Positions 1 to 31,001 are shown, counted from the first letter of the stretch. The stretch is DNA of 64,000 nt from Auanema rhodensis (GCA_964057225.1 OZ059900.1:5704001-5768000); one strand, 5' to 3'. Numbers and translations are program-made. Notes: generated by a model from the sequence alone, not told the origin.

Positions 1-561
1 ACATTTAAAATATTAAGAAAATCAATAATTATTTAGAAAAAAACAATAAATATTCAAATATTCAAATTTTCGAAATGTCCAGAATATTGGCACTGGACCA
101 CATATTCCTAATTAACAATGTTTAAAAAATTAATTAATTAAACAAAGAGGAAAAAAATGTGGAAGACAGATGACAAACATCTCAATGCGGAGAAAATAAC
201 GGAAACATAACAGGATGACTGTAGCAGACAGTATATACCCATTTGTCTGCATATTTTACCATCTACAGTCGTAAAACAGACAATCTTGATAAAGCTTGAA
301 GAATCCCAGAAGGGTTTGTTCAAATACGAAATATTTTTTTTGAAATTTACAGAAAGGTTAGTTGTAAAATAAAGTACAGATAATCTTGGATGAAACCAAC
401 ATTACTACAAGACAATTGATATCAGTGATACAATAAGAGTTTCTTTATTATAACAAGAACAACAAGAAAACAAATATTAGCCTGAGGCCAAAACAAAATA
501 AAAAGTCTTGTAGACTTATGCAAACATAAAACGTGCAACAAAAAGTTTTCAACTGATTCCA

Positions 562-2369
562 TCAACAATCACTCTTCCAAACACGAATGGTCGTATAAGG
601 TTCAAGTCCGCTGGTAACAATCGAATTTTCAGTTGGATGACAATCCATGGCTCCAATAACTTCTGAACAATAAACTATGCTCTTACAATCGTAATAATCA
701 CAAGCCAACCAGACATTCCTGTGATAGCTTGTACCACATTTTGGCTTTCCATATCCCAAATCAAGAGTTTCTTATCTTCAGATCCACACATTATAAACTG
801 AATGAATTCATGCAGCATGCAACAAAGCGTGCCTATTACCTGTCCTGATGTAAAAGAGAAGCAGCAGTCAAGTTTATATCCCTCGTTTTTATGTCCCTTG
901 TAGAGTTTCAAACAATTTTCTTCTTGCCAATCCCATAATTTAATGAAACTAAATTTCATAAATAAAAAAGCAAACATCCAATAGAAAACTTTACCCGTCA
1001 AACGTAGCTGACAAGATATATTTTCCATTAGGAGAGAATCTTGCAAAAGACACAGGATATGAATTACCGTCTGCAGTCATTAGGTAAGATAGATAAAAAA
1101 TTACATAAACAACAATCCTGAGATCCGTCTGCAATTATCGACTTTACACATAAGCGAGTATTGGAATTCCAAATACGGATCAATCCATCGTAAGCAGCAG
1201 TGCAGAAGTGAGTTCCATCACTGCAAATCAAAACAGTTTCACAAGCAACAAAACTAAAACTCACAAATTGAAATAAACAGCTGATACAAAACCACAATGA
1301 GCATCTAACTGATGGAGACACAGCCCTGTGTTAACACTCCAAACACGTACAGTACCATCAATTGAGCCTGATATAACAAGCTTGCAAACAAAAGATTATG
1401 TCTAAAACAGCCAAACCTGATAAAGCTAACTTTGACTGCGGACACAAACTACAGCACAAAGCTTTCTGTTCATGTCCTTCAAAAACGCGAATACACTTGC
1501 CGGACAATTGCTCCCAGAGCTTAAAAACGAAAAATTACAAGAATTTTCAATGTTAAATACCCTGCAAGTGCAATCGTCTGATGCTGAAAACAACAACTTA
1601 TCGTCCGAGCTCCACACAAGATCATTAACTCCTAATTTATGACCAGACATCTGGATAAAAATATTGTACCACCATATATATGCTTACGAACCGTTTTCAT
1701 AACTGCGCCGTTTATATAATTCCAAATTTTAATCATGCTATCGGAGGAAGCGGACGCAATGAAACTACCACAGTATGAGAACTTAACCGCATTTACTGCT
1801 CTAGTGTGGCCATTCAAAGCAATGAATTCAACATAGTTCGGGCTTTTCTTTTTTTCGACCTAGAACGAATGAAAACTGTTTTTCGTTCTAATGATAACAC
1901 ATTTCCTAACCTCTAAGTTATCATTCCTAGAATTCGCAGTTCTTTCCATCATCTCTTCATACACTTCATTACATTCCATTTCTTCAGGTATAATGATGAA
2001 TTCCTCCATAATATCATCGTCATCCTGTAATAAACAGTTTAAATTTGCAATTTCGAGAAAGAAACCTCATCGATAAGGTGAGATTCTTCTGATTTTGTGC
2101 AAGATAGCAAATTCGCTGTATTACTTTCACTCTTACTGTTGTTCTGAGAACTAAAATCTGAATGGAAGCCAGATTCCTTGTTTTCAGCATCAGCAGCATT
2201 CAAATTCTGAACAGCTTACGACATAAGATAAAACATCTAAAGTAAAATAGTCTTACTGAGCTTTCAGAACAGTTCAGATTAATTTTCTTTGCTGCCACAG
2301 AAGAAAGATGTGGTGCATTTGAATCCTAAATCATCAAACGGTGAAAATATCTGAATAAGTTTATACCAT
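562..2369 (-). CDS. wdr-5: WDR5-like WD40 protein, divergent paralog with acidic N-terminal extension (copy A, multi-exon)
   Basis: Spliced translation gives LNGHTRAVNAVKFS, SGHKLGVNDLVWSSD, SASDD, LSGKCIRVFEGH, YDGLIRIW, FSPNGKYIL, YKGHKNE, GSEDKKLLIWD, CHPTENSI and ends WKSDC*, colinear with WDR5 including its C-terminus. ATG at 2369; the introns checked are GT-AG, ~40-55 nt. Confidence 0.9.
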
Positions 2370-3325
2370 TTTAAAAAACGTTTGTGATGTTAATTTGAGT
2401 GAGAAATGTAAACCTGAAAAGAAAAAAAAATAGGTTTGGAATAATGAAAATAAAATTATTTCCCATAAGCTAATTGTATAGAATAGTTTGCAAGTTATTT
2501 AAGTATTCACAACATATAAAACGTTTACCTATCCAAACAGAATAAACTAAACAGCAACATGTCATAGAAATACCAAGTATTACATAAATGAATATTAGGA
2601 TGTACAATCATATCCGATCCTACACGCTGAGAAAACCCAATGAAACCAACAATATCATTACTTCCGCCATGTTACAACAATCAGTTATCTCATAAACAAA
2701 ATAAAATTATGTTCTCCTCAAAAGAAAATTGGAAAACAAAGTATACTAACCTATAGCTATGATGACATTTAAAATATTAAGAAAATCAATAATTATTTAG
2801 AAAAAAACAATAAATATTCAAATATTCAAATTTTCGAAATGTACAGAATATTGGCACTGGACCACATATTCCTAATTAACAATGTTTAAAAAATTAATTA
2901 ATTAAACAAAGAGGAAAAAAATGTGGAAGACAGATGACAAACATCTCAATGCGGAGAAAATAACGGAAACATAACAGGATGACTGTAGCAGACAGTATAT
3001 ACCCATTTGTCTGCATATTTTACCATCTACAGTCGTAAAAGAGACAATCTTGATAAAGCTTGAAGAATCCCAGAAGGGTTTGTTCAAATACGAAATATTT
3101 TTTTTGAAATTTACAGAAAGGTTAGTTGTAAAATAAAGTACAGATAATCTTGGATGAAACCAACATTACTACAAGACAATTGATATCAGTGATACAATAA
3201 GAGTTTCTTTATTATAACAAGAACAACAAGAAAACAAATATTAGCCTGAGGCCAAAACAAAATAAAAAGTCTTGTAGACTTATGCAAACATAAAACGTGC
3301 AACAAAAAGTTTTCAACTGATTCCA

Positions 3326-5133
3326 TCAACAATCACTCTTCCAAACACGAATGGTCGTATAAGGTTCAAGTCCGCTGGTAACAATCGAATTTTCAGTTGG
3401 ATGACAATCCATGGCTCCAATAACTTCTGAACAATAAACTATGCTCTTACAATCGTAATAATCACAAGCCAACCAGACATTCCTGTGATAGCTTGTACCA
3501 CATTTTGGCTTTCCATATCCCAAATCAAGAGTTTCTTATCTTCAGATCCACACATTATAAACTGAATGAATTCATGCAGCATGCAACAAAGCGTGCCTAT
3601 TACCTGTCCTGATGTAAAAGAGAAGCAGCAGTCAAGTTTATATCCCTCGTTTTTATGTCCCTTGTAGAGTTTCAAACAATTTTCTTCTTGCCAATCCCAT
3701 AATTTAATGAAACTAAATTTCATAAATAAAAAAGCAAACATCCAATAGAAAACTTTACCCGTCAAACGTAGCTGACAAGATATATTTTCCATTAGGAGAG
3801 AATCTTGCAAAAGACACAGGATATGAATTACCGTCTGCAGTCATTAGGTAAGATAGATAAAAAATTACATAAACAACAATCCTGAGATCCGTCTGCAATT
3901 ATCGACTTTACACATAAGCGAGTATTGGAATTCCAAATACGGATCAATCCATCGTAAGCAGCAGTGCAGAAGTGAGTTCCATCACTGCAAATCAAAACAG
4001 TTTCACAAGCAACAAAACTAAAACTCACAAATTGAAATAAACAGCTGATACAAAACCACAATGAGCATCTAACTGATGGAGACACAGCCCTGTGTTAACA
4101 CTCCAAACACGTACAGTACCATCAATTGAGCCTGATATAACAAGCTTGCAAACAAAAGATTATGTCTAAAACAGCCAAACCTGATAAAGCTAACTTTGAC
4201 TGCGGACACAAACTACAGCACAAAGCTTTCTGTTCATGTCCTTCAAAAACGCGAATACACTTGCCGGACAATTGCTCCCAGAGCTTAAAAACGAAAAATT
4301 ACAAGAATTTTCAATGTTAAATACCCTGCAAGTGCAATCGTCTGATGCTGAAAACAACAACTTATCGTCCGAGCTCCACACAAGATCATTAACTCCTAAT
4401 TTATGACCAGACATCTGGATAAAAATATTGTACCACCATATATATGCTTACGAACCGTTTTCATAACTGCGCCGTTTATATAATTCCAAATTTTAATCAT
4501 GCTATCGGAGGAAGCGGACGCAATGAAACTACCACAGTATGAGAACTTAACCGCATTTACTGCTCTAGTGTGGCCATTCAAAGCAATGAATTCAACATAG
4601 TTCGGGCTTTTCTTTTTTTCGACCTAGAACGAATGAAAACTGTTTTTCGTTTTAATGATAACACATTTCCTAACCTCTAAGTTATCATTCCTAGAATTCG
4701 CAGTTCTTTCCATCATCTCTTCATACACTTCATTACATTCCATTTCTTCAGGTATAATGATGAATTCCTCCATAATATCATCGTCATCCTGTAATAAACA
4801 GTTTAAATTTGCAATTTCGAGAAAGAAACCTCATCGATAAGGTGAGATTCTTCTGATTTTGTGCAAGATAGCAAATTCGCTGTATTACTTTCACTCTTAC
4901 TGTTGTTCTGAGAACTAAAATCTGAATGGAAGCCAGATTCCTTGTTTTCAGCATCAGCAGCATTCAAATTCTGAACAGCTTACGACATAAGATAAAACAT
5001 CTAAAGTAAAATAGTCTTACTGAGCTTTCAGAACAGTTCAGATTAATTTTCTTTGCTGCCACAGAAGAAAGATGTGGTGCATTTGAATCCTAAATCATCA
5101 AACGGTGAAAATATCTGAATAAGTTTATACCAT
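3326..5133 (-). CDS. wdr-5: WDR5-like WD40 protein (copy B)
   Basis: Same exons as copy A shifted by 2764; ORF-track translations overlapping the gene are identical. Confidence 0.9.
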
Positions 5134-6113
5134 TTTAAAAAACGTTTGTGATGTTAATTTGAGTGAGAAATGTAAACCTGAAAAGAAAAAAAATAGGTTT
5201 GGAATAATGAAAATAAAATTATTTCCCATAAGCTAATTGTATAGAATAGTTTGCAAGTTATTTAAGTATTCACAACATATAAAACGTTTACCTATCCAAA
5301 CAGAATAAACTAAACAGCAACATGTCATAGAAATACCAAGTATTACATAAATGAATATTAGGATGTACAATCATATCCGATCCTACACGCTGAGAAAACC
5401 CAATGAAACCAACAATATCATTACTTCCGCCATGTTACAACAATCAGTTATCTCATAAACAAAATAAAATTATGTTCTCCTCAAAAGAAAATTGGAAAAC
5501 AAAGTATACTAACCTATAGCTATGATGACATTTAAAATATTAAGAAAATCAATAATTATTTAGAAAAAAACAATAAATATTCAAATATTCAAATTTTCGA
5601 AATGTCCAGAATATTGGCACTGGACCACATATTCCTAATTAACAATGTTTAAAAAATTAATTAATTAAACAAAGAGGAAAAAAATGTGGAAGACAGATGA
5701 CAAACATCTCAATGCGGAGAAAATAACGGAAACATAACAGGATGACTGTAGCAGACAGTATATACCCATTTGTCTGCAGCAGCAGATAAAAAAAATATTG
5801 TAATGAATTTATTTTTTGAAATTTTGAAATTTTGTTTGTTTTGCATTAGGTCAGACTTTCAGTTTGGTGCATAATGTAATATCTAATTTAATTTTTTTCC
5901 ATAATTTTATATAATTTGAATAGATAAAGATAATAGAAAAATAAACATAGCCATCGTTAATTTTGCAATCGCGTATTACGTCCTTTTGTTTTTTGTCATT
6001 CTTACAGTTTTTCTTTTATTCAGATGTTGGAACAAATACATTAAAAAAATGTTTATTGGTCGACTATGTAGCGTTAAAAATGCCATTATATGATTTCTTT
6101 TTTTAATAAAAGT

Positions 6114-7973
6114 TTAGGCTTGAACGGGCTCAGCTGCAGTCTCAGAGTCAGGGACAACCTGTCAAAATTAATATTAATGCATTAAGGAATTTTTAAAACT
6201 ATTACTTCGGCTACGGGCTGATCTGGTTCATCCTCAAACTCTTTTTCAGGCACAGACAGAGGGACTGGATCGACAGGTGGACGAGCAGCATCTCCTTCAG
6301 CTTTAACTTGTTCGATGTACTTTGGAGGCTCAAGATTTTTTCTAATAATGTTTCTTTTTTCTGTATATACATTGTTTTGAAACGTTTACCTGAGTTGCTC
6401 AAGTTCTTCGTTTTCTTTGCGTCCCCACTCAGCTGGTGGGCGAGCTGTTCCACGAACAAGAGTGTAAGGCTTCTTTGTTATAGGGTTTTCAAACAAGTAA
6501 CGACGATCTCCGTAAGATCTGGTAGCCAAAAATTGCTTATTTTTCAAATGATCATAGTTACCTGCGATCAGTTTGTCTGTCAAATTTAGAAGATACGGTT
6601 ATCTTTGGTGGGTGGAGTGAACGAGCAGCTTCTTCGGGATCCAATCCCTTCTTCAAAGCCTTGTTACGAGCAACTTGGCGCTGACGCTCATGAAGCTCTT
6701 TTACCTCAAATGATACTACATATCAATAGTACTCATACAAGCTTACGTCATATTCTTGGCGTTCATGTCTCTTCTCGAGATCGTATTTTTCAGCTTCAAG
6801 CTTGAGAATACGATCATAAAGATTCTTAATCCTTTCTTTAAGATCGTTTGGCAAAAGTCCAGAAATATCTGTCGATCTGCAAACGGCATTCAAGAATGCC
6901 TTCTTGGCTTCAGCAGCTTGTTCAGGAGACATTCCACCAGCAGTTTTGGTCTGAAAATAAATTTGAATATATATTTTTGTCTTCATATGTAACACCTGAG
7001 CCAAATTTCCAAACTGAGAGGCTTGGTCTCCCTTGCTGTTGATAGTGAAATTTTTTCCACCATCAGCAGTAGCAGCAGCAGCAGCAAAGGATCCAGCCAT
7101 CATTTGTTGGCGTCTAGCCTTCTCCTCGTTTTTACGTAGTTTTTCAGCATCAGCACGGTTTTTGCGATCTTCCTGAAATCTTATGAAAATAAAATTTAAT
7201 ACAAAAGAAAGAGATGGTGGCTGGTTTTTGACCATCTGATATCATTTAAAAGATTTGAATTTTCTAATGTACCTCGTCTTTACGACGTCTTTCTTCGTCT
7301 TGACGTCTGCGTTCAGCAAATTCGCGTTCTTCTTGTTCTCTTTCAGCTCTTGAATATCAAATAGCTAATTATAAAAATCATAAAACATACCTTCTCTTTT
7401 CTTGCTTAACTTTGAGTTCACGGAGTTCGTCTTCGATTTTTTGACGCTCAAGAACACGACGTTGTTCGTAATCAAGCATTTTAGCTGCTTCTTCTTCTTC
7501 GTGACGTTTCTTAGCTGCCTGCAATTTACTTTTGTTATCAATTTTTAAAATTTTTTTTTACAAGCATAGCAGCTTCAGCTTCCGTCATTTCTGCGGGAGG
7601 CTTCTCATCTTGAACTGGAGGTGGTCTGGGCTTTGGTCTATAAAGTTCAAATCATCATAACGATTCTTAATATATTGTTGTACTTCTCTTCTTCGACTGG
7701 AGCTGGTTCAGCTTCAGCAGCTTCAGAAACTTCTTCTTCTTCCTCTCTTAAAAAATGTATAAATGTTATCAAAATTGTAAAAGGAGTTCAAACTTGTCTT
7801 CTTCTTCAACTGCGTCAGCAGCCTCAGACTCTTCAACCTCTTCAATCTCTTCTTCCTCACCAGAACTGAAAAAGCAGAATATTTTGTTGTTGATAAAGAT
7901 ATAATGATTAGAAAATATGATTAAAAATGAAGCATTGGATTTAGACTTACAGTACTTCCTCTTCGTCAGACAT
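6114..7973 (-). CDS. Troponin T (mup-2/tnt-2 type), multi-exon
   Basis: MSDEEE acidic start; [28 protein letters not shown]; [32 protein letters not shown]; [24 protein letters not shown]; [19 protein letters not shown] are nematode troponin T motifs. Paralog identity not resolved. Confidence 0.93.
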
Positions 7974-29320: not shown

Positions 29321-29833
29321 TTAATCTTCACACCAAGCGTTTTCCTTGCGGATCTGTTCTTCTTCCTCAGGAGTAAAATCGTTTATTATATTGAAAGTAC
29401 GACGAATTTCTTCAGGGCTTTTGCCCTTGATGAGATTAGCAACAGATTTGCATGTTACATCCAAAAGTCCGGGAATATCCAAGTAGTTAGCAGCCAAGAT
29501 AATCTCAAACAGTGTAGCTTGGTCAACCTTCAGAAATTCGACATCCCATGATGGAATATCATCCAATCGCTTTTCACGTGAATCCTTATCTTCTTCTGGC
29601 TCATCATCTTTATGGTAAGAACACCATTGAATTACTTTCTTCAAAACAGCACCATTGACACATTGAACTGGCACGGGCTCCATCTCAGTCAAATCGGTAG
29701 CGTCAAGACCCAAATCGATAATCATAGTATTCAAAGTGTTAGAAAGGCGAACAACATCGCGATCTACTTCAAAAACCTCTTGATCAGAAGAGCGAAGTCT
29801 GATTTTAGGAGATGAGTTAGCAACAGCAGCCAT
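29321..29833 (-). CDS. skr-1: SKP1-family SCF adaptor, single exon, 170 aa
   Basis: [79 protein letters not shown]. Likely ATG at 29833 just after a tttctag acceptor-like site; the ORF track's upstream extension looks non-coding. Exact skr paralog uncertain. Confidence 0.93.
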
Positions 29834-31001
29834 TTGGAATTGTCTAGAAAGTAAATAATAAGTGGTATAATAAAGAGAAATTAAAAGAAAAGTTAAAAAG
29901 AAATAAAAGAGATTATGTTTTAATATCAATACTTATATTCAACAAAAAAACATGAGTAGGAAGTAATAATACAATAAACTTGTCGAAATAGAGTTCATGA
30001 ATCGAGACAAAAAAAAATTTGAGATATAAATAACATTTATCGCATTAGAATCATACATATTATCGTAATATTTCGTTATATAAAATATATAAAATGAAAA
30101 TTAATTCATGGTTTATAAATCAAAAGTTTTTAAAAAGGCCAAAAAATATATTGAAAAACTAAGAGCAAAGAACTAGCCTAATTATTTCGGTTAGCTCGTA
30201 CTTAGTCATACACTTAGTCTATAGGTCACATGTGATTCAGAAAATTTGGCGCACAAAAAAGAGGCTAAGAAAAAAACAGTGCACACTCCAGGTCGCAGGG
30301 TGAATAAATGAGGTCAAATCAATAATTCTCATATTGGTTCGTCATAATCAAACAGCAGATATATAATAGTATTTAGCTGAGCCAGGAATTGTAAGCTCCG
30401 CCCATTACGCGACGCACGTTATGCGATCGTGTCAAGACCAATTTCTGTATACGACCTATAGATGCAAAGGGTTATTATATTGGAACGATAAATGCATTTG
30501 AAACAAAGATCTACGGATATGTTCACAACTGCACAGTATCACAAAAAAGAATTAGCTGGCCAATATTATGACTTATAACATAATATTTGGCTTCGTCTAG
30601 TTGCCAGATTCGGTGATTATTGAATGGCTGCAGGCAATGTGTGTGGGCTGTTTTGTTATGTACTAATGCAAAAATCAATAAAGTTTAATGGCATTAGAAT
30701 TAAAAAATATATGATGTAGTTTCAAAGGAATCTGAATGGATATATAGTTCGAAGGTTTTCTTAACGTTTTAATTAAAATAATAAATATTAAATAAGCTTG
30801 GATTGAACAGTATTAAAGTAGCTCGGAACTATCTCACTAACATTACTTCGTGATTTCTTTTTTCACTCTCATATTAAATTATTTTTTAAACTCGGAATTA
30901 AAATGAATATCATAATGATAATATTTGTGTTTGTTTTTAAAATAAAAAATATGCGTAGAATATAAAATGAATTACATATACATATATACATTTAAACATA
31001 G

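Follow-up and report, generated by a model that had tools for sequence, protein, structure and literature searches.

Close to the left end of a 64,000-nt stretch of Auanema rhodensis DNA (GCA_964057225.1 OZ059900.1:5704001-5768000; hereafter the window) lies a gene of the WDR5 family that occupies positions 562-2369 on the minus strand. It comprises 13 coding exons with a combined coding sequence of 1,272 nt, which runs from an ATG at 2369-2367 to a stop codon at 564-562 and specifies a protein of 423 aa. From high to low coordinates, the exons as modeled from GT-AG splice sites and RNA joints are 2369-2367, 2325-2257, 2206-2066, 2024-1911, 1859-1692, 1650-1561, and 1519-1417 (exons 1-7), followed by 1367-1265, 1220-1114, 1070-995, 948-840, 797-710, and 662-562 (exons 8-13). 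The 12 introns that separate them are all of the GT-AG type and are 41-51 nt long, and the donor of exon 9 was placed at 1114 by the RNA joints.

Contigs of 1,425 and 1,612 nt from runs X12 and X13, both of which behave as RNA, lack every one of these 12 introns, and the missing segments have CT..AC ends when read on the plus strand. In the DNA runs X6 and X10, none of the joints is present. Because all coding introns are spliced out in RNA contigs, the gene is real, intact, spliced, and transcribed, and is no chance open reading frame. The first-pass annotation of this DNA, made from the sequence alone, had left room for a gene that is not expressed, and the spliced contigs settle this point in favor of expression. 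A pseudogene was also considered and is ruled out by the open frame, the splicing, and the transcription.

The transcript extends beyond the coding region on both sides. Its 5′ leader (2370..2727, minus strand) consists of the remainder of exon 1 (2413-2370), a 115-nt GT-AG intron (2528-2414), and a leader exon that runs from 2727 or beyond to 2529. The leader intron is also seen as an RNA joint at 2411/2527 (cut +2) in an X13 contig, and the acceptor at 2413 is precisely where the X12 transcript contig stops. At the other end, a 3′ UTR covers 455..561 on the same strand, with the RNA contig ending at ~455-465. The cis-spliced leader (2529-2609 plus 2370-2413, minus strand) contains an in-frame ATG 27 codons upstream that would yield a 450-aa protein, and it holds five more upstream ATGs.

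This gene is one member of a tandem array. The array fills positions 1..5778 with 2.09 units of 2,764 bp in head-to-tail orientation, each unit carrying one whole gene, and it continues upstream of the window. Self-BLAST delimits the units as 1-2764 and 2765-5527 (99.86% identical), followed by 251 bp of a third; Tandem Repeats Finder did not find the array because its period limit is 500. The second coding span (3326..5133, minus strand) is that of the first copy shifted by 2764, and the two coding sequences are identical as DNA and as protein, since none of the four differences between the units is coding.

Units that are 99.86% identical might be suspected of being an assembly artefact in which a single copy had been multiplied. 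We consider this explanation extremely improbable. The junction between a unit end and a unit start (2764 to 1) is present in contigs of the independent DNA runs X6 and X10, which belong to two other studies and carry other organism labels, and this argues that the array is not a product of assembly. Moreover, the units do differ at four positions; at unit position 79, different runs yield reads of both variants.

The complete array probably holds ~4.95 units, or five complete genes. On the right it ends at unit position 251. Contigs of X6 and X10 leave the unit at position 391 with the same foreign sequence, and this position is probably the left edge. Several contigs break at 1122-1185, within exon 9, and then continue into unlike sequence; such breaks may represent diverged extra copies or homoeologues in the genomes of the runs concerned. 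The spacer between copies, including the junction of two units, is covered by RNA contigs (2527-2764 continued into 1-388, minus strand; the same is true in unit 2). Such coverage could arise from read-through or from polycistronic transcription of the array, and trans-splicing may take place at 2413.

The GC content is ~31%. The gene next to the array (6211-7235, minus strand) looks like one for troponin I, and a Skp1-like open reading frame of 170 aa from its ATG lies at 29321-29929 on the same strand; the exact product of the latter has no record in the public gene collection. A scan of the 64-kb window with Rfam gave no matches.

The WDR5-family protein begins with an extension of ~120 residues that is probably disordered. 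Residues 1-120 are encoded by exons 1-4 (1911..2369, minus strand) together with the start of exon 5, and are acidic (pI 4.3) and rich in Ser, Asn, and Thr. Pfam has no match in this extension, and a pattern scan of it found neither a WIN motif (A-R-[AST]) nor a WBM motif ([ED][ED][IVL]DV[VT]). The segment EEFIII (residues 78-83; 1989-2006, minus strand) loosely recalls the WBM motif, with no actual match. That EEFIII might serve as an intramolecular ligand of the protein is speculation only.

The remainder of the protein was initially annotated as a WDR5-type propeller, and this assignment is upheld by Pfam, by sequence identity, and by tree placement. All nine pieces encoded by exons 5-13 have PF25175 (WDR5 beta-propeller) as their best specific match, and they are colinear over profile positions 5-296 (in order, 5-47, 48-75, 78-111, 113-145, 147-178, 179-200, 203-264, and 271-296). 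The scores of the pieces sum to ~225 bits, to be read against a gathering score of 250 that applies to the whole domain, whereas only pieces were scanned. Identity to canonical WDR5 proteins is 45-49%, in vertebrates and nematodes alike, and reaches 50.2% to human WDR5 over residues 32-334 in a MAFFT alignment; for other WD40 proteins it is 30% or less. The motifs SGHKLG, SASDD, FSPNGKYIL, GHKNE, CHPTEN, and WKSDC are all retained, the last two in exon 13 (562..662, minus strand), where CHPTEN...RVWKSDC-stop forms a WDR5-type C terminus.

FastTree (LG+gamma) was run on 30 non-redundant sequences, without C. elegans WDR-5.1/5.2/5.3; with plant WDR5B as the root, the topology is (Trichinella,(Elaeophora,(Necator,(A. 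rhodensis protein, P0253)))). Two nodes of the nematode WDR5 clade have a support of 0.96. The pairing with P0253 is weak (0.53) and may reflect long-branch attraction; the terminal branch leading to the A. rhodensis protein measures 0.775 against a median of 0.106, or ~7 times as long. P0253, a 483-aa protein from a Logan RNA assembly (SRR33369744 contig L001 1-1556), carries a Pro/Gln-rich N-terminal extension and is very similar to the C. elegans WDR-5.3 sequence shown in a published alignment. The A. rhodensis protein has in common with Necator WDR5 and P0253 the nematode-specific states FS-x-CG, GSEDKK, DCHPT, and SGLE, which support its descent from the nematode WDR5 lineage.

Relatives were collected by a word search of a 5.8-billion-protein collection with offset rows of exon pieces. 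Each row appears to be read as non-overlapping 5-mers that start at positions 1, 6, 11..., such that row offsets alter the results, and the length limit appears to be taken from the first row of the alignment. The search retrieved 120 WDR5-family proteins. The A. rhodensis protein is not among them, nor is it present among the proteins of 144-507 aa covered by the word search, where the nearest relative is 49% identical. Offline profiles that reproduce the E-values of the search indicate that the protein would score 273 and 352 bits. Because its own score would be 273 bits, neither the protein nor close kin in the range of 144-458 aa appear to be represented in the collection. Judged by this word search, no close orthologue appears to be known.

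Other searches were less productive. A word search with a 133-aa stop-free frame returned no candidate of 73-232 aa, and one with an unrelated 262-aa scaffold plus the nine exon pieces returned generic WD40 proteins only. An exhaustive protein search with the short 79-aa piece from exons 11-12 was dominated by long multi-WD40 proteins, included no match of WDR5 size, and was uninformative. The exon 11 piece, queried against the ESM Atlas, gave scores below 0.9 and was equally uninformative. Metagenome contigs scanned for the exon 11/12 junction gave zero matches.

The feature that first drew attention to this gene is its arginine-binding (WIN) pocket. The first-pass annotation had quoted HEQKALCC, GHKNEGYKLD, FSPNGKY, and WKSDC-stop, all four of which occur in the minus-strand translation of 562-2369 with exact coordinates. 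From the first two segments it had read the substitutions F133L, C261K, and F263D, with the proviso that a proper alignment could restore the aromatic residues. No such restoration occurs, because the exon pieces align to human WDR5 without gaps, and HMMER and MAFFT both keep L133 and D263. In HMMER comparisons with PDB chains, for which the full-length human WDR5 chain 2xl2_A (334 aa) served as the reference, the exon 5 piece covers human residues 32-82 without gaps. The exon 7 piece (query 4-40) aligns without gaps to human residues 111-147 and places L on F133. The piece from exons 11-12 (query 44-123) aligns to human residues 237-302, with only a translated intron looped out, and sets K against C261 and D against F263.

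On the DNA, these changes can be assigned to individual codons of the minus strand. Exon 7 (1417..1519) encodes GHEQKALCC in blade 3, where K stands at human Y131 (codon 1465-1463) and L at F133 (1459-1457). Exon 11 (840..948), which spans blades 5/6, encodes GHKNEGYKLDCC, with K at C261 (875-873), D at F263 (869-867), and F at V268 (854-852). In exon 13, G stands at human I305 (654-652). Relative to human WDR5, the full list of changes at the WIN site is S49N, A65S, S91N, Y131K, F133L, F149I, P173F, C261K, F263D, and I305G. Among its neighbors, N130Q, V132A, D172G, K259G, I262L, A264C, and S306A have changed as well. The residues A47, D107, S175, Y191, S218, Y260, and L321 of the site are retained.

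In WDR5, pocket 1 is formed by the F133/F263 cation-pi clamp on the arginine, with main-chain contacts from S91, F133, S175, and C261; pocket 2 consists of Y131/F149, and pocket 3 of A65/G89/D107 (PMC11094138, PMC7871196). The F133A mutation inactivates the WIN site and phenocopies a WIN-site inhibitor. F133Y and I305V are in use as MLL1-binding mutants (PMC7024586). In the A. rhodensis protein, all four side chains of pockets 1 and 2 are replaced (L133, D263, K131, and I149), as is C261 by K. The pocket is thus indeed non-canonical, and the replaced residues F133, F263, Y131, and F149 have been shown by experiment to matter. With L133, D263, K131, and I149 in place of the clamp and of pocket 2, the canonical uptake of a WIN arginine has most likely been lost, as far as residue identities allow this to be judged. 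In principle, D263 could pair with a basic side chain, and some binding of arginine or lysine could persist.

Changes of this type are not without precedent. In a human-numbered MAFFT alignment of the query and 71 WDR5-family proteins (from the 120 retrieved), F133 is present in 65 of 68 sequences, C261 in 69 of 70, and F263 in 62 of 70. Trichinella WDR5 (P0236, P0255, and P0277) has S133 and V263, and thus both clamp aromatics are gone. Plant WDR5B has T263 and either A or V at 131, three other family members carry C, S, or V at 263, and one WDR5-like protein from a frog has L133. The loss of clamp aromatics therefore has precedents in the WDR5 family, and the A. rhodensis protein is an unusual variant and not a new kind of protein. 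The charged pair is another matter: neither K261 nor D263 occurs in any of the ~97 family instances of the motif, none of which has K-L-D at that place, and the K261/D263 pair is unique among ~100 relatives.

It had also been considered that the same changes might be standard in a characterized nematode paralogue. For C. elegans this is not the case, since WDR-5.1, WDR-5.2, and WDR-5.3 all retain NYVF and C261 and have F, A, and F, respectively, at position 263 according to an OCR-noisy text of a published alignment (Suppl. Fig. S1, Li and Kelly 2014, PMC4027197). The A263 of WDR-5.2 does provide a partial precedent. Natural loss of the clamp in nematode WDR5 proteins seems to be under-discussed.

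The description of this protein as having a remodeled pocket requires some qualification. Although the pocket changes are real, the rest of the protein has not been spared. Taking as conserved those positions that are at least 85% identical in the family set, which is vertebrate-heavy, 94 of 231 have changed. Of the WIN-core positions, 9 of 16 have changed, compared with 85 of 215 other conserved positions (Fisher p = 0.20), in a test that is crude because of the vertebrate-heavy set; for WBM positions, the count is 3 of 12 (p = 0.37). Divergence is thus global, without significant enrichment at the pocket. As there is no such concentration of changes, the pocket may simply have been lost along with much else while the protein diverged rapidly, and a targeted edit of the pocket would explain the sequence data no better than fast evolution of the protein as a whole.

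Taken further, this pattern could mean that constraint has been relaxed, and that an amplified duplicate is drifting toward loss of function with its pocket changes as neutral decay. The global divergence, the long branch, and the absence of the protein and of known close orthologues from the word-searched collection would all be expected of such a gene. However, in both copies no stop codon interrupts the frame of 423 codons across the 13 exons, the splice sites are all canonical and are used, and the structural signatures of WD40 repeats and the C-terminal WDR5 motifs are retained. Furthermore, the only coding difference in the run of another organism, 1324 C>T, is synonymous. We consider neutral decay quite improbable, while recognizing that the amplified copies are too young to tell constraint because they are identical.

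The face of the propeller opposite to the WIN site, which binds the WBM motifs of RbBP5 and MYC, was originally described as kept, along with the segment FSPNGKY and the WKSDC terminus. Both of these strings are indeed read in the translation. Exon 10 (995..1070, minus strand), which encodes PVSFARFSPNGKYILSATFD, supplies the WBM-face residues N225 (1029-1027) and Y228 (1020-1018), and S223, G226, L240, L249, K250, F266, and E279 are also retained in the MAFFT alignment (human numbering). The cleft has nevertheless acquired V268F, L288M, and Q289E. N225A, L240K, V268E, and Q289E are standard RbBP5-binding mutants of WDR5 (PMC7024586), and L240K removes both RBBP5 and MYC (PMC7871196). The original description therefore holds for N225, Y228, L240, L249, K250, and F266, and fails at two of the four RbBP5-mutant positions. 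Because the core of the cleft is retained while Q289E and V268F fall at mutation-sensitive positions, binding of RbBP5-type partners is possible, but would be weakened or retuned. The initial inference that the protein may still bind such partners is therefore not supported by these residues.

A protein with a preserved WBM cleft and a blind WIN site could act as a COMPASS decoy, as the first-pass annotation had suggested beside a reader of new specificity; it would titrate WBM partners away from canonical WDR5, with amplification of the gene raising the dose. The retained core residues of the cleft, the lost WIN pocket, and the presence of identical copies that all lie in a transcribed array accord with this idea. 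Its weakness is that the two changes just described affect positions that define RbBP5-binding mutants (PMC7024586), and that SET/MLL preparations did not yield the C. elegans paralogues. A role as a decoy is therefore unlikely in our estimation.

The altered strand of exon 11 has a counterpart outside of the WDR5 family. A patch of 14 residues, YKGHKNEGYKLDCC (residues 341-354; 861..902, minus strand), matches human WDR83/MORG1 at 12 of 14 positions, human WDR5 at seven, and Necator WDR5 at five. The corresponding human WDR83 motif reads YKGHKNQEYKLDCC in a PDB alignment with the WDR83 homologue P0156, and the string YKLDCC is identical in the A. rhodensis protein and in WDR83/MORG1. When 14-residue segments were compared all along the protein, the WDR83 type clearly outscored both nematode WDR5s at residues 341-354 and nowhere else; the flanks of the patch in the same exon are WDR5-like.

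Such a patch would be explained by convergence on a co-adapted strand or by gene conversion over a very short tract, with the WDR83 gene of the worm as donor. A more elaborate scenario holds that gene conversion from WDR83, or strict convergence on it, closed and charged the channel and thereby created a new specificity at the top face, for example for acidic or phosphorylated ligands, and that the advantage of a higher dose in this nematode lineage then drove amplification to about five identical, co-transcribed copies. We regard this complete sequence of events as a doubtful proposition.

Considering the evidence together, we favor, with moderate confidence, the view that this protein is a fast-evolving, recently amplified member of the nematode WDR5 lineage with a non-canonical pocket, and that it most likely serves as a scaffold that works independently of WIN binding, outside the core H3K4 methyltransferase complex. 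A nematode WDR5-lineage propeller is joined to an acidic extension of ~120 residues in an architecture like that of C. elegans WDR-5.3, and recent amplification has produced the tandem array of identical copies. The residues K131, K261, and D263 would line the mouth of the channel, and canonical uptake of H3R2 or of the WIN arginine of SET1/MLL would most likely be impossible. C. elegans WDR-5.2 and WDR-5.3 are reported to be outside the core H3K4 methyltransferase complex, and it is by analogy with these reports that a scaffold role independent of WIN binding appears most likely.

The placement outside the core complex would be wrong if there were no canonical WDR5 elsewhere in the genome. 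The A. rhodensis protein would then be the only, orthologous WDR5 of this organism, having evolved rapidly and still serving COMPASS by means of co-evolved WIN motifs or WIN-free assembly. Its position in the tree, next to Necator of clade V and inside Elaeophora and Trichinella, fits the species phylogeny, and Trichinella WDR5 (S133/V263) likewise does without both aromatics. On the other hand, in the other chromadorean nematodes sampled (Necator, Ancylostoma, Elaeophora, and C. elegans with its WDR-5.1), WDR5 has remained near-canonical and retains the clamp, the branch is seven times the median length, and a long N-terminal extension combined with tandem amplification is more typical of a derived paralogue. 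For these reasons, we find a sole WDR5 rather unlikely.

WDR5 is among the best-studied chromatin scaffolds and is a drug target via its WIN pocket. Natural members of the family in which the clamp has been abolished show which functions are separable from WIN binding. In the A. rhodensis protein, pockets 1 and 2 have both been lost naturally, in combination with a charged K/D pair that is absent from ~100 relatives. Because the gene is expressed and recently amplified, it offers a ready-made candidate for a separation-of-function allele, and it adds a case to the poorly understood WDR5 paralogues of nematodes (WDR-5.2 and WDR-5.3). Divergent WDR5 paralogues and losses of the clamp were already known. 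The tandem array and the YKLDCC motif identical to that of WDR83 are new.

The protein can be compared with several known systems. With canonical WDR5 (human, Drosophila Wds, C. elegans WDR-5.1, Necator, and Elaeophora) it shares the seven-bladed propeller, 45-50% identity, the signature motifs, and the WBM core residues N225, Y228, L240, K250, and F266. It differs from these proteins by its altered WIN site, by Q289E and V268F, by a six-residue insertion before blade 5, and, at the level of the gene, by the ~120-residue acidic N-terminal extension and tandem amplification. WDR83/MORG1 has YKGHKN-x-x-YKLDCC at the equivalent strand. Its overall identity is only 29.5% (homologue P0156) and everything outside the patch is WDR5-like; with the likeness limited to residues 341-354, membership in the WDR83 family is ruled out.

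Like the A. rhodensis protein, those of the C. elegans WDR-5.3 (ZC302.2) type, including P0253, evolve fast and combine a nematode WDR5-derived propeller with a long N-terminal extension. H3K4 methylation in C. elegans does not require this type. However, WDR-5.3 and P0253 retain NYVF (F133) and YC[IL]F (C261 and F263), and P0253 is only 36.5% identical to the A. rhodensis protein. The nearest parallels to the altered pocket itself are C. elegans WDR-5.2, Trichinella WDR5, and plant WDR5B, in which one or both clamp aromatics are missing. These proteins retain C261 and carry small or neutral residues at the affected positions, whereas the A. rhodensis protein has the K261/D263 pair and K131.
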